Part shown: piece after piece, positions 1-54,483 of the stretch | How the letters are laid out: each line of letters starts with the position of its first letter | Numbering within the stretch: the stretch's first letter is position 1 | Assembly (NCBI GenBank): GCA_002269645.1 | Contig: NIVC01000335.1 | Span: 91,014-155,013, forward strand | Direction: 5' to 3' | DNA length: 64,000 nt | DNA from: Macrostomum lignano | Taxonomy: Eukaryota | Position numbers and translations under genes: made by a program | The notes under the pieces: model-generated | What the model saw: only the letters and a program-made list of their open reading frames with translations | What the model was told of the DNA's origin: nothing | Databases searched by the model: none

Positions 1-945
1 AGGGTATAGGGATGGTATGGAGGGTATAGGAATGGTATGGAGGGTATAGGAATGGTATGGAGGGTATAGGGATGGTATGGAGGGTATATGGAGGGTATGA
101 ATGGGTATAGAAGGGTATGGAGGGTATAGGGAGAGTATTGAGGGTATATGGAAGGCATAGAGAGTACAAGGAGGCCATGTATGGGTATAGAAAAAATATG
201 GAGGGTATGGAGAGTATAGGGAGGGTATAGAGGGTATAGGGAGAGTATTGAGGGTATAAGGAGGGTATAGAGAAGGTATGCAAGGGTGTAGAGAGGTATG
301 GATGGATATAGGAAGTGTATGGAGGGCATAAGGGGTACAAGGACGATATGGAAGGTAAAGGGAGGGCATGAAGAGTATATGGAGGGCATAAGGGGTACAG
401 GGAGGGTATGGAGGGTATAGAAAGGGTATAAATGGGTATAGGAATGGTATGGAGGGTATAGGGAGGGCATAAGGGATATAAGGAGGTATGGAGGGTGTAA
501 AGAGGTATTGATGGATATAGGAAGAGTATAGAGAGATATGGATGGGTATAGGAAGGATATGGAGGGTATGGAGAGATATAGGCAGGGCATGGAGGACATA
601 TTGAGGGAGGGTATAAGGGTATAGAGGGTATAGGAAGGGTATGGAAGGTATAGGAAGGGTATGGAAGGTATAGGAAGGGTATGGAGGGTATAGCGAGGGT
701 ATGGAGGTACAAGGAGGGTATATAGGGAGGGTATAAATGGGTATAGGGAGAGTATAGAGTATGGAGGGTATAGAGAGATATAGGGAGAGTATACAGAGTA
801 TAGGAAGGTATAGAGTGTACAGAGGGTATATAGAGAGCATTAGGGTATAGGGAAGGGGTATGGAGGATGTAGAGAGATAAAGATGGATATATGAAGAGTA
901 TGGAAGGTACAGGGAGAATATAGGGAGGGTATAGAAGGTATATAA
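1..945. repeat. Degenerate purine-rich tandem repeat (~10-bp unit, AGGGTATAGG-like)
   Basis: Repeated agggtatagg/gatggtatgg variants from base 1, becoming more degenerate towards ~945. Confidence 0.85.
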
Positions 946-2334
946 TTCTGCATCTAAAAAAATTGTTTCTTGGGTAAAAAACAAAGCAAATTAGCAAACC
1001 TATTAAAAAATAACTAGTCATTATTCCCTTAAGCTATGTTAGCTATGGAAATTTTGCATTTAAAACTAAAACCTAAAATAGTCTAAAACCTATAGACTAT
1101 TTTATCCCTAAGCCAATTTGGTCATAGATTATTTAAACAATTTTAATTACCAATCCAAGGCAACAAATATTAATTAACAAAACTAGCATATAAACATAGA
1201 TTTATATTATAAGTAACCATTAAATTTTATAATTTTTTAGAACTATAATATGAAAATGGTTAAATAACATAATCTTACCTAATGCTATATAAATATATAG
1301 ATATATCATAATTAAATAATAATATAACCTTGTATAAGCCTAGCTATACTAGGCCTAGACTTTGATAAAATAAATGTTTGCAGGAAAGAAAAGTCTAGAT
1401 ACAAAATATCTATGATTATGGCCACAATAATTTTAGGGCAAAAACAAAATTTAAATAACAAAAATGAGAATATAGTCAAAACATTCTTATTTTATAAATG
1501 TAGGCCTGGCCTAATGGACTTTTTTATGCTAGAAATTAACCATTTAATTTTTGTTTGGTTTTAAAAAATAAAATGCTTTGATATTAAAAGCTTATTATTA
1601 TCCCCATGCTCCATGCATTAAAACTTGATTTATTTGGTAGGCCTATATTTAATGATCAATGTGCTTCCCAACCCCATCAAGTTTGATTTTAATTTTTCTA
1701 GGCCTAGGCCCCTATGCCAATTGTTAAATAGGTTGTAAATTAGGCCTATCAAATAAAAAATCAAAGTACCTTAGTAATCTGCAATCACCCCATTCCAAAT
1801 TTTCTAGATCCCAATCTGAAATGAAACCAATAGAATAGGTCTAGTCTAGTCTAGTCAGTGTGGCAGAACCAGGTAGTAGGCCTAACGATGATGATATGAT
1901 ATATTTTAATGATATTCTGACAATCCATCTATCTAGGCTAGGCCCCTAAGCCTAAGTCATATCTAATATCCATATCTGTATTTTAGGGATCGCAGTCGCA
2001 GTCAGCTTAAACAAGCCTGCTGCTGGCACTTGTACTCAAAATTAAGCATATTCAAAATTGATGATGTATCGAAAGTTGCTTTAGGAATAACTAACTCTGT
2101 ACAGTGAAATGTATGTAACTCCCGTTTTTTTTATAAACGAATAGAAAGCAATACTATTCAGTTGTGATTAGGCTACAATATTGAATTTTGACGGTACTAG
2201 TTTGTTTGTCATTGTGCAGGCAATATGTACGAGTATCCAGCATGCAGTAAAGGCAACCAGCATGCAGGATATGCATGTTTATCGTACCTAAAATTGTGCT
2301 GAATTCGCGTATAAACTGCTGACACGGGTGAAAA

Positions 2335-2712
2335 GGGTCTCCCTAAAACACGCACCGCCCCGCCCCACAGCGCTACACGTTAAAACAAATTTGACTATAA
2401 CTGAAGACATTTCAAAATGCGTTTTATGTTAAGCTTCAAGCTTTTATTTAACTTAGTTTTTTTACTTTAAAATATCAAATTCCGTGTATAATAAGTGATA
2501 TTATTAATAATATTAATGAAATAATAATAATTTAATTTAATAATGCAAACGAGAATATGAAAAATAATAATAATATTTAAGGTAATAATTAAAGTTAATT
2601 ATTATGTTACTCTTACAACCAATAGTTTTCTTTGCAATCGAAATACTGCATTGACAAAAATGTTATAATGTGTAGCGGTCGGGGCGGTGCGGTGCGTGTT
2701 TTAGGGAGACCC
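2335..2712. mobile_element. MITE / non-autonomous DNA transposon, 378 bp, 8-bp TSD
   Basis: 24-bp perfect TIR GGGTCTCCCTAAAACACGCACCGC at 2335 with its reverse complement ending at 2712 (imperfect to ~45 bp). Flanking 8-bp direct repeat GGTGAAAA at 2327-2334 and 2713-2720. AT-rich non-coding interior. Confidence 0.9.
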
Positions 2713-3938
2713 GGTGAAAATTAATTAGGCCTAAAACAAGTTCTGTTAAACTAATCAAAAGGCTTACGCTTATTGTAAAGAAAACTTTATATTATTAAGG
2801 ATAAACAGGCTTTAGTTCTGTATATTTTTATTGAAAAGTACCATATAAGTTCCTTTTTGTTATTGTGTGAAATTGTTTACACCTATCTTTTTTGACTTGT
2901 CAAGACGATTATTTTATGTCAATTGAAACTAAAAAAATGAAAGTTTATGACACTTAAAGTTTATGAGACTAAAAATAGCCTTAGGCTCAAGATCTACGAG
3001 AGCGGCAAAAAAACTTCAAAATATTCTAAGATAAACTACTCATTCAATTTTTTTCTTTTTGTTGAACTTATACATTATACTATAGTCGAGTTATAGAAGG
3101 TTTTTTTAGTTTTTATAATTATTAGAAATATTGTATACAAATTGTATAAAAGACAAAAATTACAATTGATTTGATTTTTAATAATAACATAACAAACCTA
3201 CTAATAAAACCTGTTATAATTGAACTTTAATGTCTAATTGTCAAAACGAACTTTAATTTATATATTCAATTTATTCATGTGTTGATTTTTCAAACTATCT
3301 GCAGTATAAATTACAACTATGTTACTGCAGTGCAGCACAATGCAATCTAATTTTACAAGGCTCAAAATATCAGAGTTTCTGTCTGTGTATTTTGTCTTTA
3401 ATGTTTTTTCTCAGCAAAATTAATTCCTATCTTTTTTAGAGAATCTTGATTTAGAGATAATACAAAAAATAATCTTGACAATGTGCTGATTATAGAATTT
3501 ATGGCACAGTACCATAAAATACTATTTCTTTTGTAAGTATGATGTACATATTTATGTTGCTAGTAATGAAAAACATTGTCAATTTTTGTCCTATAGTGAT
3601 TATAATGACCTTTGTGTAGTTTTTGCCAATGAAAATGACTAGATTCTAGGTAAAACTATGAATTTCCATTCCTTATTTAAAATATTTAAAATTAATTTTG
3701 TCTGAAATGTTAAACTTTATCAATGAAATATAAGAGTCACAATGTGTTTAATATATCAACCTATACATGTATATGGTTTGCCAAGTTTGTTTGTCATCAT
3801 TAATCTATATACAAGTTGTTTATTTTCTTACTTGGCATTGCAGGGCCATTGGGGAATAAAGTATAATAGTATGTCAAAATGGGCTCCAACATGTGCAGAG
3901 CGCGTCACAGGGGCATCAATGTGGCCCTAAACTCGCAG

Positions 3939-6900
3939 GCCATCACTCCGACTCCAGCTCTGCCCCGCTGTCTGCTCTGCTGCAAGTTCAACAGAATCGG
4001 CCTCCAATAGCGGTGTGCCACTTGTTGCCAGGCGATCCTACCTGCGCCGTGTTTGATGGTTTTCCTTCAATTTTCAACAAATTTACAATCGCCAATGAAG
4101 CTCTTAAAGCTGAACCAGATGAGGAACAAATACGCACTGTGTTTTTCTTCCACGGCGTTGGTGGCAGTTGCGACGTGTTTTTCTTTCAGATTGGCTTTCT
4201 GCATCGAATGGGATACGAGGTTTGAGAGACTCATTGTGCTAGGGTTGGTGTGTTGGGTTTGTTGTGCTAGTGTTGGTGTGTTGGGGTGGTTGTGCTAGGG
4301 TTGGTGTGTTGGGGTGGTTGTGCTAGGGTTGGTGTGTTGGGGTGGTTGTGCTAGGGTTGGTGTGTTGGGGTGGTTGCGCTAGGGTTGGTGTGTTGGGTTT
4401 GTTGCGCTAGGGTTGGTGTGTTGGGTTTGTTGCGCTAGGGTTGGTGTGTTGGGTTTGTTGCGCTAGGGTTGGTGTGTTGGGTTTGTAGTGCTAGGGTTGG
4501 TGTGTTGGGTTTGTTGTGCTAGGGTTGGTGTGTTGGGGTGGTTGTGCTAGGGTTGGTGTGTTGGGGTGGTTGTACTAGGGTTGGGCGTGTTGGGGTGGTT
4601 GTGCTAGGGTTGGTGTGTTGGGGTGGTTGTGCTAGGGTTGGTGTGTTGGGGTGGTTGTGCTAGGGTTGGGCGTGTTGGGGTGGTTGCGCTAGGGTTGGGC
4701 GTGTTGGGGTGGTTGCGCTAGGGTTGGTAAGTTGGGGTGGTTGTGCTAGGGTTGGGCGTGTTGGGGTGGTTGTGCTAGGGTTGGTGTGTTGGGTTTGTTG
4801 TGCTAGGGTTGGTGTGTTGGGGTGGTTGCGCTAGGGTTGGTGTGTTGGGTTTGTTGTGCTAGGGTTGGTGTGTTGGGTTTGTTGTGCTAGGGTTGGTAAG
4901 TTGGGGTGGTTGCGCTAGGGTTGGTAAGTTGGGGTGGTTGCGCTAGGGTTGGTAAGTTGGGGTGGTTGCGCTAGGGTTGGTCTGTTGGGTTTGTTGTGCT
5001 AGGGTTGGTGTGTTGGGGTGGTTGTGCTAGGGTTGGTGTGTTGGGGTGGTTGCGCTAGGGTTGGTGTGTTGGGTTTGTTGTGCTAGGGTTGGTAAGTTGG
5101 GGTGGTTGCGCTAGGGTTGGTAAGTTGGGGTGGTTGCGCTAGGGTTGGTAAGTTGGGGTGGTTGTGCTAGGGTTGGTGTGTTGGGTTTGTTGTGCTAGGG
5201 TTGGTGTGTTGGGTTTGTTGTGCTAGGGTTGGTAAGTTGGGGTGGTTGCGCTAGGGTTGGTAAGTTGGGGTGGTTGCGCTAGGGTTGGTAAGTTGGGGTG
5301 GTTGCGCTAGGGTTGGTAAGTTGGGGTGGTTGTGCTAGGGTTGGTCTGTTGGGTTTGTTGTGCTAGGGTTGGTGTGTTGGTGTGGTTGTGCTAGGGTTGG
5401 TGTGTTGGGGTGGTTGCGCTAGGGTTGGTGTGTTGGGTTTGTTGTGCTAGGGTTGGTAAGTTGGGGTGGTTGCGCTAGGATTGGTAAGTTGGGGTGGTTG
5501 CGCTGGGGTTGGTAAGTTGGGGTGGTTGCGCTAGGGTTGGTAAGTTGGGGTGGTTGTGCTAGGGTTGGTCTGTTGGGTTTGTTGTGCTAGGGTTGGTGTG
5601 TTGGGGTGGTTGTGCTAGGGTTGGTGTGTTGGGGTGGTTGCGCTAGGGTTGGTGTGTTGGGGTGGTTGCGCTAGAGTTGGTGTGTTGGGGTGGTTGTGCT
5701 AGGGTTGGTGTGTTGGGGTGGTTGTGCTAGGGTTGGTGTGTTGGGGTGGTTGTGCTAGGGTTGGGCGTGTTGGGGTGGTTGCGCTAGGGTTGGTGTGTTG
5801 CGGGTTGTGCTAGGGTTGGTGTGTTGGGGTGGTTGCGCTAGGGTTGGTAAGTTGGGGTGGTTGTGCTAGGGTTGGTCTGTTGGGTTTGTTGTGCTAGGGT
5901 TGGTGTGTTGGGGTGGTTGTGCTAGGGTTGGTGTGTTGGGGTGGTTGTGCTAGGGTTGGTGTGTTGGGTTTGTTGTGCTAGGGTTGGTAAGTTGGGGTGG
6001 TTGCGCTAGGGTTGGTAAGTTGGGGTGGTTGCGCTAGGGTTGGTGTGTTGGGGTGGTTGTGCTAGGGTTGGTGTGTTGGGGTGGTTGTGCTAGGGTTGGT
6101 GTGTTGGGGTGGTTGCGCTAGGGTTGGTAAGTTGGGGTGGTTGTGCTAGGGTTTGTCTGTTGGGTTTGTTGTGCTAGGGTTGGTGTGTTGGGGTGGTTGT
6201 GCTAGGGTTGGTGTGTTGGGGTGGTTGTGCTAGGGTTTGGTGTGTTGGGTGGTTGTGCTAGGGTTGGTGTGTTGGGGTGTTTGTGCTAGGGTTGGTGTGT
6301 TGGGGTGGTTGTGCTAGGGTTGGTAAGTTGGGGTGGTTGTGCTAGGGTTGGTGTGTTGGGGTGGTAGTGCTAGGGTTGGTAAGTTGGGGTGGTTGTGCTA
6401 GGGTTGGTGTGTTGGGGTGGTTGTGCTAGGGTTGGGCGTGTTGGGTTTGTTGTGCTAGGGTTGGTGTGTTGGGTTTGTTGTGCTAGGGTTGGTGTGTTGG
6501 GGTGGTTGCGCCAGGGTTGGTGTGTTGGGGTGGTTGCGCTAGAGTTGGTGTGTTGGGTTTGTTGTGCTAGGGTTGGTGTGTTGGGGTGGTTGTGCTAGGG
6601 TTGGTGTGTTGGGGTGGTTGTGCTAGGGTTGGTAGGTTGGGGTGGTTGTGCTAGGGTTGGTGTGTTGGGTCTGTTACGTGTCTGAAAAAGCCTTCTAACG
6701 GCCTTTGACCTGAAATTACAGTACAAATATATATGTTAAACTTTTGTTAAAATTCCTCCAATACAGGTGGTAGCCATGGACCTCTTGGGTCACGGTTGCA
6801 GTCCAGTGAGCAGCTCAGGCCCGGATTACACATTCGAGTCGCTGTGGTTGGACGCGCTAAGTTTGTTTGACAGATTTGCCGCCCCGGGCAAGCGCAACGC

Positions 6901-8307
6901 CGTTATTGCGCATTCATACGGCACGGCGTTTGCTGCCAGGCTGTGCGTCGAACGATCGAAAAGAATCTCCCGCGCCGTTCTCGTCTCCGGCGGCGGACCG
7001 AGCGCGCTAGGTGGTGCGCCAGTCTGTTTAAGCTGCTGCTGTTTCTGTAGTTGCTGTTGCAATGCGTTCTGTCGCTGCTTAGCCAGAATATTAGCGTTTG
7101 CGCCGCGCTCGCGTCCGCCGCTGGGTCGCCGTTCGAGTCCCGCGCTGTTGGAGGCGCCGCCAGAGGTGCTGGCGTGGACGCTGGTGGGCCAAGACTGGCC
7201 AGAGGGCGGCGTTGACTATCACAGGACGGTGGCAGCGCCTGTGATGCTCATGCACGGCTGCGAGGTAAGAGTCTGGTAAAGATCTGGATCCTGCGTGATG
7301 GTTGGAGCTGGTCTGGAGTGTGTTGTTGACTGTTAGAGCTGGTCTGGAGTTTGTTGTTGACTGTTGGAGCTGGTCTGGAGTTTGTTGTTGACTGTTGGAG
7401 CTGGTATGGAGTGTGTTGTTGACTGTTAGAGCTGGTCTGGAGTTTGTTGTTGACTGTTGGAGCTGGTCTGGAGTTTGTTGTTGACTGTTGGAGCTGGTCT
7501 GGAGTTTGTTGTTGACTGTTGGAGCTGGTCTGGAGTTTGTTGTTGACTGTTGGAGCTGGTCTGGAGTGTGTTGTTATTGGCTGTTGGAGCTGGTCTGGAG
7601 TGTGTTGTTATTGGCTGTTGGAGCTGGTCTGGAGTGTGTTGTTGACTGTTGGAGCTGGTCTGGAGTGTGTTGTTATTGGCTGTTGGAGCTGGTCTGGAGT
7701 GTGTTGTTATTGGCTGTTGGAGCTGGTCTGGAGTGTGTTGTTGACTGTTGGAGCTGGTCTGGGGTGTGTTGTTGACTGTTGGAGCTGGTCTGGAGTGTGT
7801 TGTTGACTGTTGGAGCTGGTCTGGAGTGTGTTGTTGACTGTTGGAGCTGGTCTGGAGTGTGTTGTTGACTGTTGGAGCTGGTCTGGAGTGTGTTGTTGAC
7901 TGTTGGAGCTGGTCTGGGTCAAATCGGCAACTACCCTCTAAATGTGCAACCAGGATCGCCTAGTCTCCGCAGAGGATGAAGAATGGATGCTGGAGACACT
8001 GCCCCTGACTAGATTAGTTCGAGTACCCAACGCCGGCCACCTGGTCACTTTAGAGGCCCCAGAAACCGTGAACGCCCATCTCGGCCAGTTCCTGCACTCC
8101 GCCAGACCCGTCGGTCACGGTCGGGTCCCGCCTCTGCCGCCGCCAATCTTTGCTACCGGAGAAATTCGACACAGTCAGCGGCGCCAGCAGCGACGTTGGG
8201 AGCGTCGGGGTAGCCAACAGAGGTCGGATCCGAGTCTGAGCTACACTGCGCCAATTGGAACTGCAATTGCTAGCGAGGGAGTTTACAATCCAGCACTGCA
8301 GTTGTAG
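3939..8307 (+). CDS. ABHD8: ABHD8-like alpha/beta hydrolase (5' end probably incomplete)
   Basis: Exons ~3939-4219, 6767-7264 and 7954-8307 join in phase 0 across GT-AG introns: FFFHGVGGS...GYE|VVAMDLLGHG, nucleophile elbow AHSYG, MHGCE|DRLV (acid), NAGHLVTLEAPETVN (His). The FHGVGGS / GYEVVAxDLxGHG pattern matches recalled ABHD8. The first acceptor (3938) is tentative and no start codon was identified. Confidence 0.82.
4233..6672. repeat. 28-bp G-rich minisatellite filling ABHD8 intron (~87 copies)
   Basis: Unit GTGCTAGGGTTGGTGTGTTGGGGTGGTT with recurring variants (TAAGTT, GCGCTA, GGGTTTG). Confidence 0.97.
7300..7918. repeat. 31-bp minisatellite in ABHD8 intron
   Basis: Unit GTTGGAGCTGGTCTGGAGTGTGTTGTTGACT, ~20 copies. 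Confidence 0.97.
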
Positions 8308-26736: not shown

Positions 26737-32628
<5,892 letters not shown>

Positions 32629-33694: not shown

Positions 33695-34940
33695 CTTCAA
33701 GGCAACCATCTTCAAGGTAACCATCTTTAAAGCAACCATCTTCAAGGCAACCATCTTTAAAGCAACCCATCTTTAAGGCAACCATCTTTAAATCAACCAT
33801 CTTCAAGTAGACCAACTTCAAGGCAATCATCTTTAAAGCAACCATCATCAAGGTAACCATCTTTAAAGCAACCATCTTCAAGGCAACCATCTTTAAAGCA
33901 ACCCATCTTTAAGGCAACCATCTTTAAATCAACCATCTTCAAGTAGACCAACTTCAAGGCAACCATCATCAAGGCAACCATCATCAAGGCAACCATCCTC
34001 AAGGCAACCATCTTCAAGACAACCATCTTCAAGGCAACCATCATCAAGGCAATCATCTTTAAAGCAACCATCTTCAAGGCAACCATCTTTAAAGCAACCA
34101 TCTTCAAGGCAACCATCTTTAAAGCAACCATCTTCAAGGCAACCATCTTCAAGGCAACCATCTTTAAAGCAACCATCTTCAAGGCAACCATCTTTAAAGC
34201 AACCATCTTCAAGGCAACCATCTTCAAGACAACCATCTTAAAGGCAACCATCTTCAAGGCAACCATCTTCGAGGCAACCATCTTCAAATCAACCATCATT
34301 AAGGCAACCATCTTCAAGGCATCCATCTTCAAGGCAACCATCTTTAGGGCATCCATCTTTAAATCAACCATCTTCAAGGCAACCATCTTCAAGGCAACCA
34401 TCATCAAGGCAACCATCCTCAAGGCAACCATCTTCAAGGCAACCATCTTTAAAGCAACCATCTTCAAGGCAACCATCATCAAGGCAACCATCCTCAAGGC
34501 AACCATCCTCAAGGCAACCATCTTCAAGGCAACCATCCTCAAGGCAACCATCATCAAGGCAACCATCCTCAAGGCAACCATCTTCAAGGCAACCATCTTT
34601 AAAGCAACCATCTTCAAGGCAACCATCTTCAAGGCAACCATCATCAAGGCAACCATCCTCAAGGCAACCATCATCAAGGCAACCATCCTCAAGGCAACCA
34701 TCTTCAAGGCAACCATCTTTAAAGCAACCATCTTCAAGGCAACCATCATCAAGGCAACCATCCTCAAGGCAACCATCTTCAAGGCAACCATCTTTAAGGC
34801 AACCATCTCAAGGCAACCATCTTCGAGGCAACCATCCTCAAGGCAACCATCTTCAAGGCAACCATCTTCAAGGCAACCATCTTCAAGGCAACCATCTTCA
34901 AGGCGACCGTCTTCAAGGCAACCATCTTCAAAGCAACCAT
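33695..34940 (-). repeat. 15-bp satellite array B, inverted relative to array A
   Basis: Unit CATCTTCAAGGCAAC, the exact reverse complement of the array A unit, ~83 copies. Shares variants such as GTTGATTTG and ATTGCC. Confidence 0.97.
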
Positions 34941-41434: not shown

Positions 41435-41523
41435 ATATTTTTCATATGGGTATTTTGTTTTTATTTTATGCTAACAACTGAGAAAATATTTTATTTTCAG
41501 CCAGCCAAATCTACACTCCAACT

Positions 41524-44500
41524 ATGCCAGTCTACATGCGCAAGCGTCAGGACTCGCCGAGCCTGTCGCAACTATCCGAGCCCAACCCAGATATCGATGC
41601 AGACTTCGTGCTGGACCCGGATAAGCACCGGGACCCGCTGCCGCAGCCCTATCGGTTTATTGACAAGCTCATCGAGACTCTGCTAGAGCGCTCCTTTCAA
41701 GAAATTTTCACTCGGGAAGAAGAACGAGAACACGAGCAGGCTAGGTAAGGAGCAGCTTGCAGGTAGCGAATATACGATTCTACCAGGGACTGTTAAAATT
41801 GCGGACCGCAGTGCTGTTGAGCCAAGAATGACTTCAGTAAAACTTCGTTTCTTAGGAGAAAAATATTCGGGCTGATTTTGCGCAAAAAATGCACTACGGA
41901 CAGATAGCTAATAACTTAGATTGATTTCTATTGGAAACAGATTAGCTTCTTTGCTCGTAGTCGTAGTTGTTTAGAAACCAAAATAGACGGCTATTCTATG
42001 GCTGTTGAATTTTTTTCGCTCAGGACATGCAAATAAATGTTTTCTTTGACTTAAGTCGTCCTTGGAGTGAGTAGCGCAGTGGTTTAATGCTAGCTATCAC
42101 TAGCAGTCTTGGCCTAGCGCGAGTTTTAACATCAATTTTTTACACTAATTTCGCATTCAAACAAAAAACAATTGTCAGGCACAAGCCGCCCCAGGTGCCC
42201 ACCGATCTGTGCCGCATAGTGCCAAACATTCGATCAGCCATCAAGTTCCTCTGCCCATCGGCTGACGAACCGGACCTTCAGCAGGAGCCGGTGGATCAGT
42301 ACGGCAGCCGGTACGTATTCTGCGCTTGCGAAGGAGGTCAACTGTTCGCTTTGGACGGCGTTTCCATGGCAACAGTAGGCTCTTTTGAAGCGGCTGGACT
42401 TGACCTGGCCTACATGGCCACAGCCCAGCTGAAGCCGGGCCTGCACCTGCTGGCTACCATAGACGAGCTGGGCCTGGCACGGCTGTTTCTATGGGATGGA
42501 AGCGCCTTTCACTTGGCCAGGCTAATGAACGAAGACGAAGGCGACAAACGGATCAACTGTTTGGCTGCGTGCCTGTCTGTCGATGGCGAGTATTTGGCTC
42601 TGACTATGCAAAGTAATTTTTTCTCTTCTTGTTTGTATTTCGACTTTGTGCTGTTCTTGTTTAGTAGATGTCGAGAATTAGGATTAGAACAAATGAGATT
42701 AGATTAACGTGGTCACAGTACGTTAATGGAAACAGATTTAAAGACCTAATCAAGCCCTTTTGAGCCAAATTACTGACAGTATAATTGGCAGTAAGTCAGT
42801 GAGACGGATAACGTTGAGCAGGTCAGATTTCTATTGTGAAGTTTTAAAATACCGGATAGAGAGGCTTCTTCGCGGGCCGGAGTTTGCCGACCCCCCTGAT
42901 TTAAAGCCAAACTACAAATCCAATTCTCAACGCTTGTCTTGCCAAAATTAGACGCGTCAACCAAAGCCGTGACGTTGGAATTTCATCGGGTCCCACGCGA
43001 CGCCTGGGCTAAGGAAGTGGAGCAGCAGGCTGGCAAGCCGAATCCTCAGGCTGGCGGTGGCGTTGGAGCAGCGGGCGCCATTAAAGAAGACGGGACTGGA
43101 GACGCTGCTACGAATGGAGCTGAAGGCGACGCTTCTGGGGTAAGCAGTGCTACAGCCTGATCTCTATGCCCTTTGATCTCTATGCAACAGTTTTTGTGCA
43201 ACACGATTTCCCCTCATCGTATTCTATCAGCGCTACTATAAGTAGGCCAGTCAGATATTATATTCCAAAGTTTTTTATTAAATTTAAATTTAACGTTTTG
43301 CTACTCATCAAGACTCTCTCGTAAACAGAGATTTTCACCTTGCAAAGGAGCTGTTTACTTACTGAAATAAATTATAAGAGCCACTTCAAGTAGTGAAGCA
43401 TTTTTTGTGTTTTAACTGATATGTAGTTCTTCTGCCAGCGCTTGCATTGGCGAAGATTCTTAAAATTTGTTTATAGAAAACATGAATATACAAAGAATTT
43501 TGTCTTGCTTCAACTAAATTACATCGAGAATTGTCGAGCGAAAAGTGTCAGCAATGCAGGAGCCACAGCAATCAGCAGAGTGCCTGGCAGATCACGTGAC
43601 CTAACGCTACCAGCGCCCCTCAACTCGTCCAAGTCGATGCCGAACCCTTTGCGGCGCCGATTCAGCCGCACCAGCGCCAGAACTTCCAGCTGGCGACGCA
43701 CCTCGATCCAGTTGTTCAGCACCAGCTGCCTGAGCTCACCAAACTGTCGCCCGCTGCACACCGGCAGCAGCTGACCCGCCGTGTTGAACACCCACTCGCC
43801 GCTGACTAAGTTCAACCGATTGGGCTTGAACGCCATGTAGATGTACTTTAGTGTCTGGCCGAGCAGGTAGCTTGGCTGACGGTTGTCCGAGTGAAGCAGA
43901 CTGGATTTTGGGCTGCCAGCAGCCGCCACCCGACGGAGTCCCTCGTAGCCGTTCGATCCTCGCATCAGTCGAGCGATGGAGCGGAGAGTCAGGCTGAGCA
44001 GCCGCAGGTGGCGCATCCGACGCCGTCGACTCCAGAGCAGCAGGCCGGCCAAAACCGGTTCCGGCCGAGCGGAGTAGCGCACGTTCGCAGCCGCTTCCAT
44101 CAGCTGAAAGCTGTGCCGAGCAGCGGATCGTCGGAGCACCAGCTGATCTGGCCACAAGTTGAACTTGCCGAGCTGCACGGCTGACAGGCAGAGATCCCCC
44201 AACTGGTAGGCCAGATCCCGCTGCACAAAGGGATCCCGGGACTGGCCCATGCTGAGTAGGAGAGTCTCTACCAGTCGACAGACGGTAAGGTTGAAGCCGC
44301 ACTCATCTTCTTCAACCCCGGACTGGCAGTTCAGCCAAGCATCGAGGCGTAAGCGACCCGACAGAAGCTCCTGAAACAAACTCAAAGCGTTGCGATCCCC
44401 GTCTAGCAACAGGTGCGCCTTGATTGTCACCTCGGCCAGGGTTAGTACGCCCGACAGGTTCGATGCGGCGCCGATCGTTGGAGCGCCAGTTCGAACATCC

Positions 44501-47500
44501 CAAACGCCGGGCGGTGACCAGCTGAAACCGATGCTTGCTGAGTCATTCGCCAATATCGCCTCACCGCGTGAAGCAATTCGAGCGTCCATATGTCGTCGCA
44601 ACGGCGCCAGAATAGCGTCGGCAGCGTTGCCATACTTCTGCAAGCCGGTCAGCCGGTGCAAGTAGGCAAACTCCAGGTACAACTGCGACATCTCGTCTAG
44701 ACTGATGAATCGGCCAGCGGCCACGGGACCCTGGAAGGGGACAGCAGCTGATGCTGGCAAACCGGACGGAGTGTCGAACGCCACTAGTAGGCCCTCGGCT
44801 ACCTGGAGGGCTTTGTAGAGAAACGGCAGGTGTTCGGTGAGGCTGAACGCCGATAGCAGGCCACCGAGCAAGCGAGAGCTGGTCGCCGCTGTGCTCACGG
44901 GCTCAGTTGTGTTAGTAAAGTCGAAACGGTTGTCAATCCATTCTTGTGCCTGCGATTGAGAAAGCGGGTTGCCAAGTTAATTATTTACTTTTCAGTTCAG
45001 AGATTTGAGTTTTTTTAATGACAGAAATTATCATTTTTAACTCCATTTTCATATTTGTTTATATGCAGCTTCATTTTTTATACATCTACTGTTGCTGAAA
45101 GTTGCTGAAATGCCAAAGCTCATTGGGGAGTCGCTGAGATGCCTGCATGACCCACTTGGGGGAGATTGCAAGGGTTAAGGTTGCTAGTTAAACCTCCAAA
45201 TATTTCGACCTGTGAACCATATTGATGACGCACCTGCAGCAGCTCCTCGTCCAGTCCCATCAGATGCAGTGTTGCCAAGCTTTCAACAATAGTTAAACCG
45301 GATTTTCTCCCAACCAATCGATCGGCCTCTTTACTTGGCGCCACAGCACCCGGCGCCAGTTCGTTGGCGCCCCAACTATGGCGCCGGTACTGCCTCCAGG
45401 CGTGCTGGACGGTGCCGCGTGCTAGACTAGCTTCTTTCAGAGCGAGTTTCTCTGCGTTCAGCGTGGCGGAGTTGGACTCGTCAACTCTGAGCAGCAGCAT
45501 CCGGGATAGAAGGAATATGAGACAGACGCCTGCCAGTAGAGCCAGCATCCTTAACGAGTACTCAACGTAGCGCGGATACCTGCCTGTGATGAGGCGATAG
45601 CAGTACGCAATAATAGGCATGATTCGTCTAGTTCGAATCTCTCCACCCAGAGTCTGAGTTGGGCCTGCTCTTGCAACTTTGCTCTCAACTATATATATTA
45701 GCATTAGCTAGTTATAACTTGGCATATCTTGCTTGAAAGGCCTCGGGCTCTTCTCTCATTGAACTGTGCCTTAAGCCTATAGGGGGGGGGGGCAGAGCAG
45801 GGCCCTGTGGGACGACAAGAGAGAGAGGGCGGCAACTGCGGTTTAATCAGCTCTGCGTGTTTGCCCAAAAGAGTTTTACAGTCCTATTGTTCAAGCGCGC
45901 GTCAATGAAACGAAGAAAGCACGCACGCCAAGCTTATTCATTCCAGAAATTAAACCGTACAAGCATCTGATGCAGACAGTCTAAAGCAGCATTATGCATG
46001 CAATATAACAGAAATTACACGTACATACCGTTTTTCCAATCTGCCTCATCTAGTAAAACACAAGCTAAGCTTTATTTCACTTTCTTAACCGTGTTATTTT
46101 TCTTTAAAAGTTCCACAATTCTGGATGCCATTAATTTAGAGAGATTGTTTATTAATAAGTTATGAGAACTATATGGCTCGAAAAACTCACGCTTCTATTG
46201 TTCAAGGGTTTGCAGGGTAATACGTAGTGCTTTGCCGTGAAAGCTGGCATAAGCAACGCTATAGGCATTAACAATAGTTAGATTTATTCGCTTTATGTTT
46301 AATAATTTTGGCTTAAGACCGGTTTAGTGGTCAATATTGCTATAGTTGGTACCATTTGTAATTAAATTAATTATTATGGGAATTCACTCGGAGGGGCGGG
46401 GTGGCTGACAGCTCTTCATGATACTTTAGGCCCATTTCATTGACTTTTGAGCACTACAACTTTACGCATGTCAGAGTACGAGTCACAATTGCTCTTACCC
46501 GAATATAGCTGTCCCGGAAATTCTTCCCGAAGATAATGCTCAAGCCTATGCTGGCCCACCATCCGGGTAGCATCACCCCCCCCCCCTCGTCCAGGTGGTC
46601 AAATCAGCCAACTTTTAAAGAAGGCAGCGTCATTCATGGAACTGACGGGCGGATGCCTTGAGCTTTCATGTCACCTCGCCTCACCTCACCTCACCCACGA
46701 CTGTGCACACCAGTACGTGCAAACCTAACCCCTGTCCTACGATGACAAACCTCTGCGCACCAAACCGAGCCTTCCAGCACTCTAACCGACACCAACTTCC
46801 AAGACTCGGCTGACACACCCATCTTCGTCTGAAGCCACTCGTCCGTCTTCTTTTCACAACCCCCTCTCCAGCTCCATACAAGGCCAACAAGGCCAATGCG
46901 AAGGCCAATAAGAGATTTATAGTTACTCTCACCGTTTACCCGCGCTTAATTGAATTTCTTCACTTTGACATTCATGACCACCTGGTCAGGCCTCGTGCCC
47001 CAGAAGCTGGTACCAGCAATCGAACACCTTAGGCAAGGAAAGGCACGGGAATTGATCAAAGGACTGCATGAGCCCCAGAAGTTGGTACCCTGTTAGCGTG
47101 ACCCACTCGGAATCAGGGATCCTAGGCATTGGAGATGTGTTCAGTGCCTTAGTGACAGGCTCTCACGTGTATTGTGGTGATAGTCAGTTCTTCGGTGTGG
47201 GAATTCATTTCCTAGGCATGCCCAAAAATGGTCGACCTGATGAGTAGTTTACGCCGGCTCATGATGGTCTCTGAGGAGACCAGACCTGGTCTACTCAGCG
47301 GGTTGGCGGTGCCATGCCTTGCAAATAAACAACAGCTTCGCATGCAGTTAGGACCACCTAACTATTTAGCCTTTGTTGGCATCCAACCCCTCCGTAGGTA
47401 TGCCATCTTTTTAAGGCAGCTCCATAGGGACCCAATCTTGAGGTGGCCCGAGCATACGCTCCTGGAAGACCCATTCTATCTAGTCAGCGGTAGAGCCACG

Positions 47501-50500
47501 CCTTACGGCACCCCGTTAAACAACAACCACAAACCAACAATACGCCAACTCAAGCGTCAAGCGAGACGTCCTTCAGGCCGCAAACAGTCGATTCTGTCCA
47601 GCGCTGGTGGCAGCAGCAGCAGTCGAGGCTCCGCCTCGAGAAAATCTTCTGCTTCAGTTCGCGCCAGCAGCCGCCGTTCAGCGAGATCAGTCAGCGGTGG
47701 CGGCGGCGGCGGCGGCAGCAAAAATTTTGCTGGCAGTCGCCGTTCATCTTCGGCGGCCAATGCCGCGGAGATCAGAGGCTCTAGTAGAAGGAGGCGCGGT
47801 AGCAGACGACGGGTAACACAGCTCGTAGTAGAGACCCAGACCAGTAGAAAACGTAGATTCGTTTGACTTGGTTATTCTGTGTCAAAATTTACCACTAAAA
47901 GAATATCCAAAGCGTATTAGAAACCTTTTAGTCTCAAAGCAAAGACAACGCTCTTTGGCTAATGAATAAGTTTTTCTACCGAATGTCATGATACATTGTA
48001 CATATAGAACAAAACTGAACCACGCCAATGACCTTTCGAAAATCAAACGACATTAAAAGTTAACGTAGACCAGAACTTTCTTAGGGTAGGCAAAGACCCA
48101 AATAACCTTGAGTCGAGAGAAGGCTCGAATGACAGTGACCTTGGGTTAAGTACAGGCCCCAATGACCTTGGCATGGGAGAAAAACCAAAAGACCTTGATA
48201 TAGACGGCAGACAAAGTCAACTTTATGTAAAGCAAAGGCCCTAGCGTTCCTCAAGGTCAATGAAATTATCCAAATAAATACAATGACTTGTTACATTTTT
48301 AGCATCAAGGTTAACCCATAGGTACTAATGTGGACGCAAACTTGCGTACTAGATATAAAAGTAATTATGAATTTTTCTTGATATGTTATATATACCTTTA
48401 GAAAACATTAATTTGTTTTGACGTTTGACACCTGTATCCCCGAACCTGTACTATATGCGTTTTATTCATTGACCAAAAGGCAGCATGATTATTTCTTGAT
48501 GTGATTTTTAAATAAATTTGACGACGGCGACTACCTTTAAGCAATATTAAGGACCTTCAGATTCTTCCCAAGCGCTACTGCTCTTTAAAACACCCTCTTT
48601 TCAACAGCCCACCGCCTCAGAGGAAGCCGGCCGCGTGCCCGTTCTCAAGCTCAGCCCGCTGGCACCGGTACTCCGCGTCCGCCAGCCCCAGCCGGTGGCG
48701 TCCACAGCCGGCGCCACCACGCCAAACCTTAAACTCATCGACTCCAGCGGCGAGGTGGTCGGCAGTGGCGCCGCCCACTTGCTAACTCAGCCGCATCTGC
48801 AATTGCGCGAAGCAAATTTTAGACGGGAAAGACCGGAAGAGTTGAAATACCTGTTGGACAGCGACAATAATGAGGCAGCTAGCATGGCGTAAGTATTGCC
48901 AAATACGAGTATCTATCGATTAGTGCATGATTTTAAGTCCCGTTAATTTACCGGTAAAATTCACAGCTTGCCTACCGTCCAGTTCCTGAAGCCCGGCCGC
49001 ACTCAGGGCACAGAGCAAACTATGGACAAGAATGTTTGCGTCAGCGCTGCTGTGGCCTGGTCAGGCGACTACAAAGTGTTTATCTACCCTCTGCTCAAGG
49101 TGGGCAAAGGTGAGTGTACAACTTATTGGTGCGCTCTGGCTCGAAGATCGGGATGTACTTACATAAATTCCATGATAGCCCATCTCGCGACTCGTCTCTC
49201 AACACCTCTAACCTTTATTACCCGAGAACCAACTTTACAAAAAGCCTCTTAGTACCCCTAACATTGCAGGTACATTCCACAACACCCACCTCACGACTGG
49301 CCCCTCCGCTCCCCTGCCCCTTGATGCACATTCTACAACACCCACCTCACAACTGGCCTCTCCGCTCCCCTGCCCCTTGATGCACATTCTACAACACCCA
49401 CCTCACGACTGGCCTCTCCGCTCCCCTTACCCCTAGATGCACATTCCACAACACCCACCTCACGACTGGCCTCTCCGCTCCCCTGCCCCTAGATGCACAT
49501 TTCACAACACCCACGTCTGGCCTCTCAGCTCCCCTACCCCTAGATGTACGCGTACATTCCACAACATCTACCTCATGCCTCGACTCTCTGCCTCCTGGCT
49601 TCCTAAATTTCATTTCTGGAACTTTTTTCTTTAAAAAAATTGAATAGACCAAACTTTATATAATTAGCTGATCAAAAGTGCAATAATCTCCTCAAACAAA
49701 GCATTCCTAACATTATCTAAATGCAGCACTAGTTCATGATTTGTTGATGGATTCCGGCAGCTCCGTAGAACCAGCAATTAAGACAAAGTCCAAGTCAAAC
49801 AAAAAAACGGTTGGAAGGACCGGCATAACGAGCGCAAAGCCAACATTTGCTGGTATTTCTTATTACAGCTACCCAAGTCAGAAATTTATTCGAAGTGCAC
49901 CAACCTACCACAATACGCGCCGACAAAAACTTTCCAACCTATATTGACTTGTTGCAGCAATTTTATAGATTGTTCAACTGCAGGGTGAATTAAACGCAAA
50001 CATATCTTAATATAGAGCATAGAGTGGCATTTCATAGCGGCGAATACAATTGCCTCGTAGAACCTGTTGACTAAGCAAATATTTGAACAGAGCAAACAAA
50101 GTCAAGTATGACAGACAGAAAGAGAGAGGTATACTTGCTTGAGCAGAGGACTTTATATAGCTAACTCCAAAGTCAACACCCAAGATGCCAATATTACACC
50201 GAACGTGCAACGTTAATTATCGTTTGACTGGCTGTACTATTGGCCTAATATATTGCATATTGGCCTAATATATCAATGTACTTGAATGGTTAAAGTAGTT
50301 GGTACACTGTAGTTCTGCTGCAGTAAGTAATGGAGGCGCAATTCACAACAGGTTGGGTGCTAATTCACAGCAGGTAGCTGGTGCTTATTCACAGCAGGTA
50401 GGGTGCTAATTCACAACAGGTAGGTTGCTAATTCACAACAGTTAGGGTGCTAATTCACAACAGGTAGGGTGCTAATTCACAACAGGTAGGGTGCTAATTC

Positions 50501-53500
50501 ACAACAGGTAGGTTGCTAATTCACAACAGTTAGGGTGCTAATTCACAACAGGTAGGGTGCTAATTCACAACAGATAGGGTGCTAATTCACAACAGGTAGG
50601 GTGCTAATTCACAACAGATAGGGTGCTAATTCACAACAGGTAGGTTGCTAATTCACAACAGTTAGGGTGCTAATTCACAACAGGTAGGGTGCTAATTCAC
50701 AACAGATAGGGTGCTAATTCACAACAGGTAGGGTGCTAATTCACAACAGGTAGGGTGCTAATTCACAACAGGTTCCAAAAAAGAAGACATTTTCTCACTG
50801 ACGCGAAATTTCGTATCACACTTTTACTACTAACTAACCAAGTAGTGCACCGTGTAAAATGCCGGTTTCGAATTATTCCTCTTCGACACCAAACTTGGCG
50901 ATCATCCAGATGATTCTGCCACCAGCGATGAAGGTCGTCATGTTCAACAGCTGGGACGCGCGTCGAGTCGGTCGTCAGTGATGCAGATGACTGCACCAAC
51001 TAGACAATTAAAGTCCAGCCGATTAGGGCAAATTCAACTGGCTGGTTGGTTCTATATAGCAAAAAATTAGTATTCAAAATTAGTGCCATTAGACATCTAT
51101 CACCATAGTAAAAGATCAGTTATCTGTAATTTTCACGAGCTTGTAAATTTTCCATCGTTTCAAGACAAATGATAAAAATTACGAACTTCCGTATCAAATT
51201 CATTTCTCATAAAACCAGACTTGATGACATTGTCACCAGTGTCAATCAAATCTATCAGCCGCAGCCTCTCTGCACCCAAGATCCACAATCCACTGCAGCC
51301 ACCCCACTCCCCGGGACGATCTATCTTTCACCCCGCTTCTCTGCACCCCAATCTGCTGCAGCCACCCCACTCCCCGGGAAAACCTATCTCTCACCCCGCT
51401 TCTCTGCACCCCAATCTGCTGCAGCCACCCCACTCCCCGGGACGATCTATCTTTCACCCCGCTTCTCTGCACCCCAATCTGCTGCAGCCACCCCACTCCC
51501 CGGGACGATCTATCTTTCACCCCGCTTCTCTGCACCCCAATCTGCTGCAGCCACCCCACTCCCCGGGACGATCTATCTTTCACCCCGCTTCTCTGCACCC
51601 CAATCTGCTGCAGCCACCCCACTCCCCGGGACAACCTATCTCTCACCCCGCTTCTCTGCACCCCAATCTGCTGCAGCCACCCCACTCCCCGGGACAACCT
51701 ATCTCTCACCCCGCTTCTCTGCACCCCAATCTGCTGCAGCCACCCCACTCCCCGGGACGACCTTATCTCACCGGGCCTCTCTGCACTCCAGTCTAACTTA
51801 ACTGTCAATCACTCTTTCTGTTTGACGCGATTTTATTTTAGTCAATTAATCGTCAATATAATTTTTTTAAATTAAGAAACTATAATTAATTAGGATAATT
51901 TCATCTCATATACAAGTGCTTTCTAAATGTTTTTTCCATTGCAATTAAATCAAGTGATGCACATTCCAATTTTTTACAAGGTACTAACTTTTTGTCACTC
52001 TTTCGGGGTAAAATGCACTGTTTTTAGACTACACGAAAATATTTGCGAAGCACTGGAACTAAAATTAAAAAAGAAAATTCCTCTAAACTAATTCCATAAT
52101 GAAAAAGTACTTTTCTTGCTTTCTTTCTCTATCCATCTCAGATCTGGAATTCCGCCCCGAGACGGTTTGGACTTTCGGTTCGCCAGTTACCTGTCTCACG
52201 GTATCACACTGCGCCTCCTTGATTGCCGTCGGCCTGGAGTCCGGCAACCTCATCTTACACGACCTTCGACTCGGCCTAGTGCGTCACGTGATTAGCGTGG
52301 ATCCGGAAAATCCGCGTCCAATCGTTCGAGTCTTCTTCCTTAATCCACCGGCCGACGAGGAGCAGAGCGACAATCTAGGCCAGGCAATTTACAAGTAAAT
52401 GTGCCGGATATCACAGCACCGCTTACTGATCACTATAGAGACTAAAGTGCATCCATTTTCCCGCGATCCTTGATTGATCCCACACTAGACCAGTGCAACT
52501 CATGTCTGATTCCTCATAGACCAGTGCAACTCATGTCTGATTACTCATAGACCAGTGCAACTCATGTCTGATTCCTCATAGACCAGTGCAACTCATATCT
52601 GATTCCTCATAGACCAGTGCAACTCATGTCTGATTCCTCATAGCCCAGTGCAACTCATGTCTGATTCCTCATAGCCCAGTGCAACTCATGTCTGATTCCT
52701 CATAGACCAGTGCAACTCATGTCTGATTCCTCAAAGACCAGTGCAACTCATGTCTGATTCCTCATAGACCAGTGCAACTCATGTCTGATTCCTCATAGCC
52801 CAGTGCAACTCATGTCTGATTCCTCATAGACCAGTGCAACTCATCCCTGGTCTCAAGATCCGAAGGTGAAACCAATCAAACCAGTCTTGTTCATTAAACT
52901 ACCTGAGCTATCCTTGCCAACGCAGGTCCACTCAACCTGTTAGAGCCGCTATCTACAACAGCGACCTTAAGCCGTACCTAGCCGACATTGGTCCCGAAGC
53001 CGCTCCTCCGACAGCGAGTCCGCTGCCGCACAGCGCCAGGCACGCTTACGAGGCTCCGCAACTGGTGGACTACTATCCACTGGGTCATCCGACCCTCCTG
53101 CTGAGGGCCACCCGTAGTGGAGCCATTGTGTTGCACGACGTTCGTCTTGGAAGGTAACTGCTACCACACTGTTACTTTTGTTTTGTAGGTAATATATCGA
53201 TTTGTTTAAATTTCTTGAAAACCTCATAGTCAAATTACGAGTTTTTTCAATAGTGGCTACTTTTGTCAACTGTGCAGTTTAATTATGTTTACTATTATTG
53301 TGTTCACCGATGCCTGACGCGACTAAGCCTCCTTCTATCTCGATCTCCTCTAAGATGCATTATACATGTAGGGACTTACCTCGTAAAAGATGCATAGTGA
53401 AGGTTTAATTAGGTATTATTATTAGTAACTCAGATGGCAGGCTTTGAAGGCATTGTAACCGTATCGAAGCCTATGTATCCTCAAATGGTATCATTGATAT

Positions 53501-54483
53501 TGAAACGTCAAAAACAACAGTAATGCTTTTAATCTACGCGTAATGTGTTTTTATGTTTCTTATGTTTAACTCAACAAATCTTGCGTAATCTATCTTTATT
53601 CATACCTTAGTTCCTCCATCTAATAATCCATAACTTGTATTGACTGATGCCTTTCGCAGGGAGGTGCTGCACTTTAACCTGCCACCGCCCTACCAGCTGC
53701 CCGAACCGTGGCAGCAGGGCGGCTGGGCCCTTGCAGCCGGCGGTCGCAGCCTCTTCATTCGAGGTCGACGCGAGTTGACCAGCGGAGAAGGCGACGTTGA
53801 CGCGACAGGAGCTGCCATCGACGGAGACGTCACTGCCGCCGCTGACGAAGCCGCTGTCAGTGCTCGCAACGATGAAGAGCGACTTTTCTGCTACAGTCTG
53901 AAGATTTTGGTGCCAATGCGGCCCTACTGGAAGCAGCGGCGAGTACAGCAGGTGCCCTGCTTTGTCCACTGCAAAGTGGAACAGAGGGCCGACGCTTACC
54001 TGCAGCACAGGTGAGAGAGATATTGCCGGATCATGGGGCAACAATCAAGGCGTGCCGTAAATCAAGGCGACACACACTGAACTTGAACCTTAAGCACACG
54101 CACGCACACACAGTCACGCTCTGTGCCCAGGTAGGCTGGCTCTTGCACGACTTGGGCGTAAATTGCACGAAAAGCCCTAAGCACGTTACCACTTGATGGT
54201 GACTTTCTAAGATTGGTATTTCGAATTTTGATCTACGAGCTACGTGCTACGTACAATAGTGGAAATTTCCAGCTTTCCTACATCGTTCTCATGATATTTC
54301 ATTTACAAATATTTTCACAGGAACGCAACCCACACGGAGCGTCAGAAAACGCTGGTGGACATGTGGTCCAACTTGTTCAACACGTTGAAAGAAGTAGAGG
54401 CTGCTGCAGCCGCTGCCGCTGCTGCTGAGACACCTAGAAGTGTCAAGGTTAGTATAAGCATAGCAATTTCTGTAGAAAATTGA
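41524..54483 (+). CDS. WDR93: WD repeat-containing protein 93
   Basis: Exons 41524-41744, 42179-42612, 42952-43139, 48608-48888, 48967-49109, 52142-52394, 52926-53153, 53660-54010 and 54321-54483, all GT-AG with consistent phases (2,1,0,2,1,2,2,2). DPLPQPYRFIDKLI, LSPLAPVLRVRQPQP...GSGAAH and RPETVWTFGSPV...IAVGLESGNLILHD match recalled WDR93 segments. An alternative donor at 54448 is possible. Confidence 0.87.
43519..45620 (-). CDS. GH47 (class I alpha-1,2-mannosidase-like) type II membrane protein, predicted inactive; nested antisense in WDR93 intron 3
   Basis: Exons 45620 (or 45704)-45234 and 44949-43519, phase 0. N-terminal TM (MLALLAGVCLIFLL). HAWRQYRRHSWGANELAP, GLTIVESLATLHLMGL, RLLGGLLSAF, AFDTPSGLP, LYLEF, RPE, GQTLKY and WVFNT...LP are all GH47 blocks. 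Confidence 0.88.
47228..47866 (+). CDS. Intronless 212-aa ORF with Arg/Ser/Gly-rich basic C-terminal half; nested sense in WDR93 intron 3
   Basis: ATG in AAAAATGG context with an in-frame upstream stop. 639-nt open frame in non-repetitive DNA. Tail SRGSASRKSSASVRASSRRSARS...SSRRRRGSRRR...SRKRRFV. No family recognised. Confidence 0.45.
   Translation: MVDLMSSLRRLMMVSEETRPGLLSGLAVPCLANKQQLRMQLGPPNYLAFVGIQPLRRYAIFLRQLHRDPILRWPEHTLLEDPFYLVSGRATPYGTPLNNNHKPTIRQLKRQARRPSGRKQSILSSAGGSSSSRGSASRKSSASVRASSRRSARSVSGGGGGGGSKNFAGSRRSSSAANAAEIRGSSRRRRGSRRRVTQLVVETQTSRKRRFV
49270..49570. repeat. 56-bp tandem repeat in WDR93 intron
   Basis: GATGCACATTCTACAACACCCACCTCAC(A/G)ACTGGCCTCTCCGCTCCCCTGCCCCTT, ~5 copies. 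Confidence 0.9.
50340..50772. repeat. 22-bp tandem repeat in WDR93 intron
   Basis: Unit GTAGGGTGCTAATTCACAACAG, ~19 copies. Confidence 0.95.
51285..51775. repeat. 63-bp tandem repeat in WDR93 intron
   Basis: CAATCTGCTGCAGCCACCCCACTCCCCGGGACGATCTATCTTTCACCCCGCTTCTCTGCACCC, ~8 copies. Confidence 0.96.
52488..52845. repeat. 31-bp tandem repeat in WDR93 intron
   Basis: Unit CATAGACCAGTGCAACTCATGTCTGATTCCT, ~11 copies. Confidence 0.95.

Follow-up and report, generated by a model that had tools for sequence, protein, structure and literature searches.

The DNA considered here is a 64,000-nucleotide (nt) window of the Macrostomum lignano genome (assembly Mlig_3_7, contig NIVC01000335.1, to which it is 100% identical across the 22 kb compared), and coordinates are positions in that window unless another contig is named. 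Its minus strand carries a gene related to the GH47 class I α-1,2-mannosidases, located antisense within an intron of WDR93, and this GH47-like gene is the subject of the analysis. An original prediction had described it as a hidden gene for a membrane-anchored mannosidase-like pseudoenzyme. Hidden it is not, being already present in GenBank as BOX15_Mlig007829g2 (PAA85342.1; 619 amino acids (aa), 5′-partial) with the product name "hypothetical protein." The observation itself was otherwise confirmed, with corrections, and the interpretation placed on it was partly supported. The gene is probably a transcribed, selectively maintained, Macrostomum-lineage-specific GH47 class I α-1,2-mannosidase paralogue that has turned into a pseudoenzyme. 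The gene and its host comprise the following features.

41501..54483, plus strand: host gene WDR93, annotated span, with an annotated product of 721 aa
45621..45662, minus strand: 5′ leader within the annotated 5′-partial coding sequence (CDS); the annotated protein P0197 begins PTQTLGG and P0001 begins LVGEIR
45234..45620, minus strand: coding part of exon 1, codons 1–129, from ATG 45620 (MPIIAYCY...)
44950..45233, minus strand: single coding intron of 284 nt, phase 0, GTGCGT...TCGCAG, between Q129 and A130
43519..44949, minus strand: exon 2, codons 130–605 and TAA, the same as in the annotated PAA85342.1 CDS
44731..44802, minus strand: in-frame GT..AG segment of 72 nt inside exon 2, spliced out in P0002, the model annotated for the paralogous copy L001

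Two minus-strand open reading frames (ORFs) are listed for this region, at 45120–45704 and 43519–44898, and spliced translation joins them into a single 605-codon frame that ends at the stop codon TAA 43521–43519, so that the ORF is intact with one in-phase GT..AG intron, as had been predicted. The AG acceptor of this intron lies at 44951–44950, and the annotated proteins span the junction as LLQ followed directly by AQEW. The start had been placed at ATG 45704; this codon was rejected, because small deletions in a paralogous copy put a stop into that extension and because the annotated transcripts begin near 45662–45650. The ATG at 45620 is the first to be conserved; both this codon and the frame are preserved in a copy 95–97% identical, giving a protein of 605 aa. 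AG dinucleotides directly precede the annotated transcript starts and may serve as spliced-leader acceptors. Removal of the 72-nt segment of exon 2 deletes 24 aa (VAEGLL...VPFQ), and the models of the other two copies retain it; the difference reflects either exitron-like alternative splicing or an artefact of annotation.

The nested position of the gene follows from the host. Segments of the Pfam WDR93 profile are collinear on the plus strand, with profile positions 11–143 at 42.3–43.05 kb, 148–281 at 48.6–49.25 kb, and 285–319 at 52.1–52.4 kb. Since these segments flank the GH47-like gene in collinear order, the gene lies within a WDR93 intron, between the exons at ~42.96–43.05 kb and ~48.6 kb; the predicted antisense nesting was thus borne out by the annotated span and the profile matches, and it is common to all three genomic copies (3/3). 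The possibility that the ORF belongs to WDR93 itself was rejected, the plus-strand ORFs across the region being at most 110 aa long and without a Pfam match. A protein search with the WDR93 exon at 42087–42707 gave no match despite the annotated 721-aa product and is uninformative on expression; the host protein is seemingly not retrievable through word-indexed protein search. The WDR93 span also contains a 63-bp tandem repeat (51286–51794; 8 copies, 95% matches), which is open in all three frames of the plus strand and in one of the minus strand and so yields spurious ORFs of 188–223 aa.

Membership of the encoded protein in GH47 was examined at the level of both sequence and predicted fold. 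The Pfam profile Glyco_hydro_47 (PF01532), searched as a hidden Markov model, matched with E=1e-52 and a score of 180 bits (cut-off 22.9), the confident alignment being limited to the N-terminal third and the C-terminal quarter of the protein. The best match by sequence in the PDB was mouse Golgi α-mannosidase IA (1nxc, E=1.4e-32), followed by human endoplasmic reticulum (ER) mannosidase I. An AlphaFold2 model built on a 95-sequence multiple sequence alignment (mean predicted local distance difference test (pLDDT) score 83.7, predicted template modelling score 0.82) superposes on ManIA and ERManI, with target-normalised template modelling scores from Foldseek of 0.80–0.82 to 1nxc, 1fo3, and 5kij and much lower scores to Htm1/EDEM structures. 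In this prediction an (α/α)7 barrel is plugged by a C-terminal β-hairpin, and the two structural disulfide cysteines, C353 and C383, correspond to C527 and C556 of ERManI, in columns that are Cys in 98% of the sequences; in GH47, C527–C556 is an essential disulfide (PMC5035969). Exon 2 folded alone without an alignment gave a useless model (pLDDT 37), which was replaced by the alignment-based one. The GH47 scaffold proposed for the protein was thus supported. Beyond the barrel, the protein carries an N-terminal anchor, a C-terminal extension, and four N-glycosylation sequons, two of which occupy former active-site positions and are conserved in all three copies (3/3).

43756..45428, minus strand: GH47 (α/α)7-barrel domain, ~residues 65–527, split by the intron (Pfam, AlphaFold2, and Foldseek)
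45489..45548, minus strand: N-terminal hydrophobic segment, residues 25–44, MLALLAGVCLIFLLSRMLLL, with Kyte-Doolittle 19-residue windows up to 2.5; predicted type II signal anchor
43522..43746, minus strand: lineage-specific C-terminal extension, residues 531–605 (75 aa), with two confidently modelled helices and then a terminal hydrophobic stretch
43537–43581, minus strand: C-terminal hydrophobic stretch, residues 586–600 (15 residues), by hydropathy
44458–44460, minus strand: sequon N293-L-S, at the former D463
44290–44292, minus strand: sequon N349-L-T, where the former D523/H524 reads N-L

Residues of the active site were surveyed in an alignment with 92 canonical GH47 proteins, made with HMMER and MAFFT and numbered here as in human ERManI. 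The diagnostic positions are as follows.

44884..44886, minus strand: A151, in the column of E330 (the general acid), Glu in 99% of canonical GH47s; VSVFETNIR has become VSTAATSSR
44458..44460, minus strand: N293, in the column of D463, Asp in 96% of canonical GH47s; GALGDSFYEY has become GAASN..TLAEV, and the Asn starts the N-L-S sequon
44059..44067, minus strand: R424-P425-E426, the RPE motif (R597, P598, E599), kept
43855..43857, minus strand: Q494, in the column of E663, Glu in 98% of canonical GH47s; LAETLKY has become LGQTLKY
43777..43782, minus strand: T519 and A520; the Ca2+ ligand T688 is kept, and the column of E689 (Glu in 97%) is now Ala; FNTEAH has become FNTAGQ

Five losses had been listed from the sequence by eye, and four of them (E330A, D463N, E663Q, and E689A) were reproduced by both alignment methods. 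The fifth, GHDEL to GANEL, is not a loss at all, as canonical Golgi-type GH47s read WGANEL, WGKNEL, or WGDNEL. The list was also too short: F329 is replaced by Ala, H524 by L350, E570 (conservatively) by D397, E602 by L429, and H691 by Q522, and further pocket changes affect I333 (now Ser) and the S/Y/Y of DSYYEY (now T/A/V). Conversely, the statement that only the RPE glutamate (E599) and the Thr ligand remain was correct as to those two residues and incomplete as to the rest, R334 (R155), E397 (E222), E467 (E302), R597, N687, and the C527–C556 cysteines being retained as well; roles for R334 and E397 in GH47 have been described (PMC5035969). Overall, among the 73 columns conserved in at least 85% of the sequences, 43 are kept and 30 are changed, compared with 66 kept in P0083, a canonical M. 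lignano paralogue, and a mean of 68 in canonical proteins. The changes fall preferentially on acidic columns, with 3/11 acidic columns kept as against 40/62 non-acidic ones (Fisher p=0.04). Because no Asp or Glu was found within four residues of any lost site, the lost acids cannot be restored by a shift of the alignment. The equivalent of D463 is either N293 or L298, depending on the placement of a 5-residue insertion, and is non-acidic in both cases.

The catalytic residues of GH47 are E330, D463, and E599 (PMC5035969), and the corresponding residues in the flatworm protein are A151, N293, and E426, only the last of the three being kept. The terminal mannose is held by R597, E599, E663, T688, and E689 (bioRxiv 10.1101/2025.01.29.635535), of which R424, E426, and T519 persist, with Q494 and A520 in place of E663 and E689. 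The replaced H524, E570, E602, E663, and E689 all belong to the lining of the −1 subsite and the Ca2+ site. An E-to-Q change at the E330 position of EDEM1/2/3, or a D-to-N change at the D463 position of yeast Mnl1, abolishes activity (bioRxiv 10.1101/2025.01.29.635535). Since either change alone kills a GH47 enzyme, the flatworm protein would not be expected to hydrolyze Man-α1,2-Man. Classical mannose and Ca2+ binding at the −1 site is likewise doubtful, because two of the five mannose-holding residues and most of the other pocket carboxylates are gone. An active glycosidase with a rearranged apparatus, for example with E599 as the base and either E302 (E467) or D397 as the acid, and possibly with a new substrate, could be proposed from the retention of E599, R597, T688, E397, and E467, the conservative replacement of E570 by Asp, and the automatic name "alpha-1,2-Mannosidase" given to a paralogue in UniRef. 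However, E330 and D463 are both changed here, together with five further pocket residues, and no acidic residue lies within four positions of any lost site; residual hydrolysis of this kind is therefore highly improbable. Judged by sequence and fold, the protein is a GH47 member that appears to fail the defining features of an active enzyme.

The pseudoenzyme reading is well supported by sequence, as the protein is a homologue of an enzyme family without the essential catalytic residues of that family and is encoded by an intact ORF under purifying selection. How the protein would be placed in the cell is suggested by its N-terminus. The hydrophobic segment at residues 25–44 is modelled in a long helix with pLDDT above 90, and the membrane-anchored, MAN1-like protein originally proposed was supported, with a predicted type II anchor. 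Its barrel would face the lumen of the ER or Golgi, and its topology would be that of the active paralogues.

An alternative is a true lectin, in which the dead pocket binds high-mannose N-glycans and so sorts, shields, or retains secretory glycoproteins. The retained fold and disulfide cysteines, the retained R334, E397, R597, E599, and Ca2+-ligand T688, purifying selection on the ORF, and a topology like that of the active enzymes are all consistent with this alternative. The pocket itself argues against it: of the five residues that contact the terminal mannose, E663 and E689 are gone, E330, D463, E570, E602, H524, the aromatic F329, and the two Tyr of DSYYEY are lost too, and Ca2+-mediated binding of O2′ and O3′ is likely compromised by these losses. 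In addition, the new sequons at N293 and N349 might bring a glycan into or above the dead pocket, and such a glycan could block it. A lectin function is, on this balance, unlikely.

The C-terminal extension is absent from all canonical GH47s aligned. Its hydrophobic tail is preceded by GAGS and a polar spacer and looks like a glycosylphosphatidylinositol signal or a second transmembrane segment; in the paralogous copy L001, R601 is converted to a stop (CGA to TGA), and the protein ends directly after the tail. With the −1 subsite and the Ca2+ environment largely dismantled and a two-helix extension added, a non-catalytic binding or scaffold role is favored over that of a classical Ca2+-dependent mannose lectin. 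Binding could occur through the remaining glycan cleft or through protein-protein surfaces to which the added C-terminal helices contribute. A more far-reaching version of the pseudoenzyme reading is that this protein is the founding functional member of a class of membrane-anchored GH47 pseudo-mannosidases with a repurposed pocket, either covered by the protein's own glycan or acting, as a cleft combined with the C-terminal helices, to regulate active mannosidases or glycoprotein fate. This extension is speculative and decidedly unlikely as it stands.

Relatives of the protein are few and distant. In an exhaustive phmmer search of 1.84 billion representatives, only M. lignano copies were found, with no orthologue elsewhere and the next match at 142 bits; in a word-indexed search of a 5.8-billion-protein collection, the next match after the M. 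lignano copies scored 91 bits. The top matches outside M. lignano come from disparate taxa (a dinoflagellate, Capsaspora, and a beetle), and corrected distances to canonical GH47s have a median of 1.93, compared with 1.27 among the canonical proteins themselves, indicative of a long branch. M. lignano retains canonical GH47 genes, P0083 (Mlig034257g1/Mlig004975g1) and P0052 (Mlig034447g2/Mlig018391g1), in both of which all of the catalytic and pocket residues are present; the identity of the pseudoenzyme to either is only 26–30%. The closest paralogue is P0052: a single 134-bit high-scoring segment pair spans the two proteins from end to end, and both have a loop shortened by 5 residues as well as the motifs LYLEFAYL, NELAP, and RLLGGLL. 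Three lineage-specific residues (Y490, S512, and G521) are shared with P0083. Parentage was judged from such shared indels and motifs because the neighbor-joining position of the protein was unstable.

A retro-derived origin had been proposed from the presence of a single coding intron. P0083 contains four coding introns, none of which (0/4) is common to the GH47-like gene, the nearest lying 13 codons downstream of the Q129–A130 junction. P0052 is intronless (538 aa; loci L005 and L006, 3001–4617, on NIVC01001772.1 and NIVC01000049.1) and is itself a candidate retrogene. Since the closest paralogue is intronless and no P0083 intron is shared, a retro origin—an intronless ancestor followed by intron gain—is plausible. 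Neither a poly(A) remnant nor a target-site duplication was seen: the flanks contain no flanking direct repeats and only a weak A-rich patch ~120 nt 3′ of the stop. At such an age, these marks would be expected to have been erased. An intronless, retro-type GH47 copy like Mlig034447/Mlig018391 probably landed antisense in the WDR93 intron, gained one intron, evolved fast, and was then duplicated in the recent genome duplication.

Loss of these residues may not be peculiar to the flatworm gene. Among the top 160 full-length matches, other GH47s were found to be without several of E330, D463, E599, E663, T688, and E689, namely Sarcoptes scabiei KAF7487767.1 and Anaeramoeba flamelloides KAJ3440908.1 (labelled P0148 and P0098) and the sequences P0172, P0022, and P0141. 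In these proteins, three to five of the same motifs are missing, and the Ca2+-ligand Thr is mostly lost too, the motif reading FNAAGH. No specific similarity of these sequences to the flatworm protein was seen. Because the substitution patterns differ and the taxa are unrelated, they look like independent losses, and dead GH47 paralogues seem to be a recurrent and so far undescribed phenomenon; literature searches returned no paper describing a GH47 pseudoenzyme or any of these degenerate GH47s. These degenerate GH47s are nonetheless labelled α-1,2-mannosidase in UniRef/NCBI, and the UniRef label "alpha-1,2-Mannosidase" carried by the flatworm protein and by the degenerate mite and amoeba paralogues is probably wrong.

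Whether the gene is maintained can be judged from its copies. The assembly holds three, on NIVC01000335.1, on NIVC01003133.1 (~99% identical), and on NIVC01000012.1, the last being divergent (~95% identical across the locus and 97.4% in the CDS); this agrees with the large-scale duplication described for the DV1 genome (PMC5730564). Over the 1818-nt CDS, the copy in the window and that on NIVC01000012.1 differ by 24 synonymous and 22 non-synonymous changes and by one stop five codons before the end, giving non-synonymous (dN) and synonymous (dS) distances of 0.017 and 0.053 and a dN/dS of 0.31. When 47 substitutions were placed randomly on the CDS in a neutral simulation, using either the non-coding or the coding observed transition fraction, the mean number of synonymous changes was 14–15, and the probability of 24 or more was 0.001–0.005. 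No indel was observed in the CDS, compared with 12 expected from the 25 gap openings in 3779 aligned flanking non-coding bases (P ~6e-6), and only 4/22 replacements fall in the conserved blocks (residues 65–250 and 420–530). Moderate purifying selection is supported, as is the original prediction that the gene is not a decaying pseudogene. The stronger long-term argument for a live gene is that the 605-codon frame and a working intron have been kept at only ~25% identity to the nearest relatives, that is, across ~75% divergence.

Transcription is implied by the annotation itself. The GenBank annotation was built wholly from RNA-seq transcripts assembled with guidance from the genome and filtered by strand and by expression level (Wudarski et al., PMC5730564), and a spliced minus-strand model in an annotation derived only from RNA-seq transcripts points to a transcribed gene.

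Several points weigh against the reading of the gene as a transcribed, selectively maintained pseudoenzyme, and some of them would favor a transcribed but functionless relic instead, namely a young duplicate under relaxed constraint whose apparent selection is a statistical or mutational-bias artefact. The divergence between the copies is 2.6% in the CDS and about equal to the 3.0% in non-coding sequence, so that constraint is only moderate; one copy has the premature stop near the end, and one annotated model is without 24 aa of the barrel; the composition of the 605-aa protein is skewed (L, A, and R together 38%, K 2%); and no orthologues were found. Homopolymer errors of the PacBio assembly may exaggerate the indel contrast, and the selection test spans only the ~3% divergence accumulated since duplication, with the long stem branch outside its reach. 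As for expression, the 5.8-billion-protein collection contains no transcript-derived (Logan) copies of the protein, the gene is missing from the two germline/neoblast supplementary tables searched, and expression tables and literature searched by gene identifier held no entry for it; the expression level may be low. In the neighbor-joining tree, P0052 is the sister in 32/100 bootstraps and unrelated sequences take its place in the rest, the long branch being unstable. The AlphaFold2 model leans on canonical homologues and is no independent proof that the divergent middle third folds, and inactivity is predicted from the residues.

A relic of this kind is nevertheless quite unlikely. At ~25% identity and with 30/73 near-invariant positions changed, neutral drift would have brought stops and frameshifts, yet the gene still has its 605-codon frame, an intron competent for splicing, and the core of the structure. 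The synonymous excess, the zero indels between copies, and the avoidance of conserved blocks by replacements also stand against it. A maintained pseudoenzyme is the reading that we favor.

Across the window, 31 rows of tandem repeats were reported by Tandem Repeats Finder, consistent with the repeat-rich M. lignano genome. Positions 1–8000 contain G-rich minisatellite arrays with 20-mer, 28-mer, and 31-mer units and a GC skew of up to 0.72, the 28-mer array comprising 87 copies at 4234–6669. Two 15-bp minisatellite arrays, at 31363–32215 and 33695–34940 (57 and 83 copies), are built on mutually reverse-complementary consensus units and form an inverted pair ~1.5 kb apart.

GH47 proteins decide between the maturation and the degradation of N-glycoproteins, and the EDEM branch of the family was debated for twenty years as lectins or enzymes, with enzymes as the outcome. 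Paralogues without catalytic activity occur commonly in families of glycosidases. If the pseudoenzyme reading is true, a dead GH47 that is conserved, membrane-anchored, and accompanied by intact paralogues would offer a natural "dead" control for the EDEM question, in a species that is tractable through RNA interference and transgenesis. The scope of this is limited to the one species from which the gene is known. Should the repurposed-pocket version be right, the degenerate proteins of Sarcoptes, Anaeramoeba, and the other sources would suggest a recurrent class of GH47 pseudoenzymes.

Among known systems, the Golgi MAN1A1/A2/C1 and ER MAN1B1 enzymes are the closest, sharing with the flatworm protein the PF01532 match, the predicted barrel, the type II anchor, the disulfide cysteines, R334, E397, the RPE motif, and the Ca2+-ligand Thr; the WGxNEL motif is that of the Golgi class I enzymes. 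The flatworm protein departs from these enzymes in the replacement of E330, D463, H524, E570, E602, E663, and E689, in the high divergence of its middle third, in the 75 additional C-terminal aa with their hydrophobic tail, and in a branch ~1.5 times longer. EDEM1–3 and yeast Htm1 (Mnl1) are GH47 homologues that were likewise proposed to be non-catalytic glycan-recognition proteins; as the prediction had noted, they keep the catalytic triad (E330, D463, and E599), along with T688, and their activity has since been demonstrated (PMC5035969; bioRxiv 10.1101/2025.01.29.635535), whereas the flatworm protein has lost E330 and D463. The EDEMs are also soluble or partnered with PDI, in contrast to the predicted membrane anchor found here, and in Foldseek the flatworm model scores better against the MAN1A and MAN1B1 structures than against those of Htm1 and EDEM. 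A parallel from outside the family is provided by the chitinase-like lectins of GH18, such as YKL-40, in which selection has kept a glycosidase fold after loss of the catalytic acid and the protein binds chitin oligomers. These lectins belong to another fold and family and retain their sugar-binding cleft, whereas the −1 subsite of the flatworm protein is largely dismantled.

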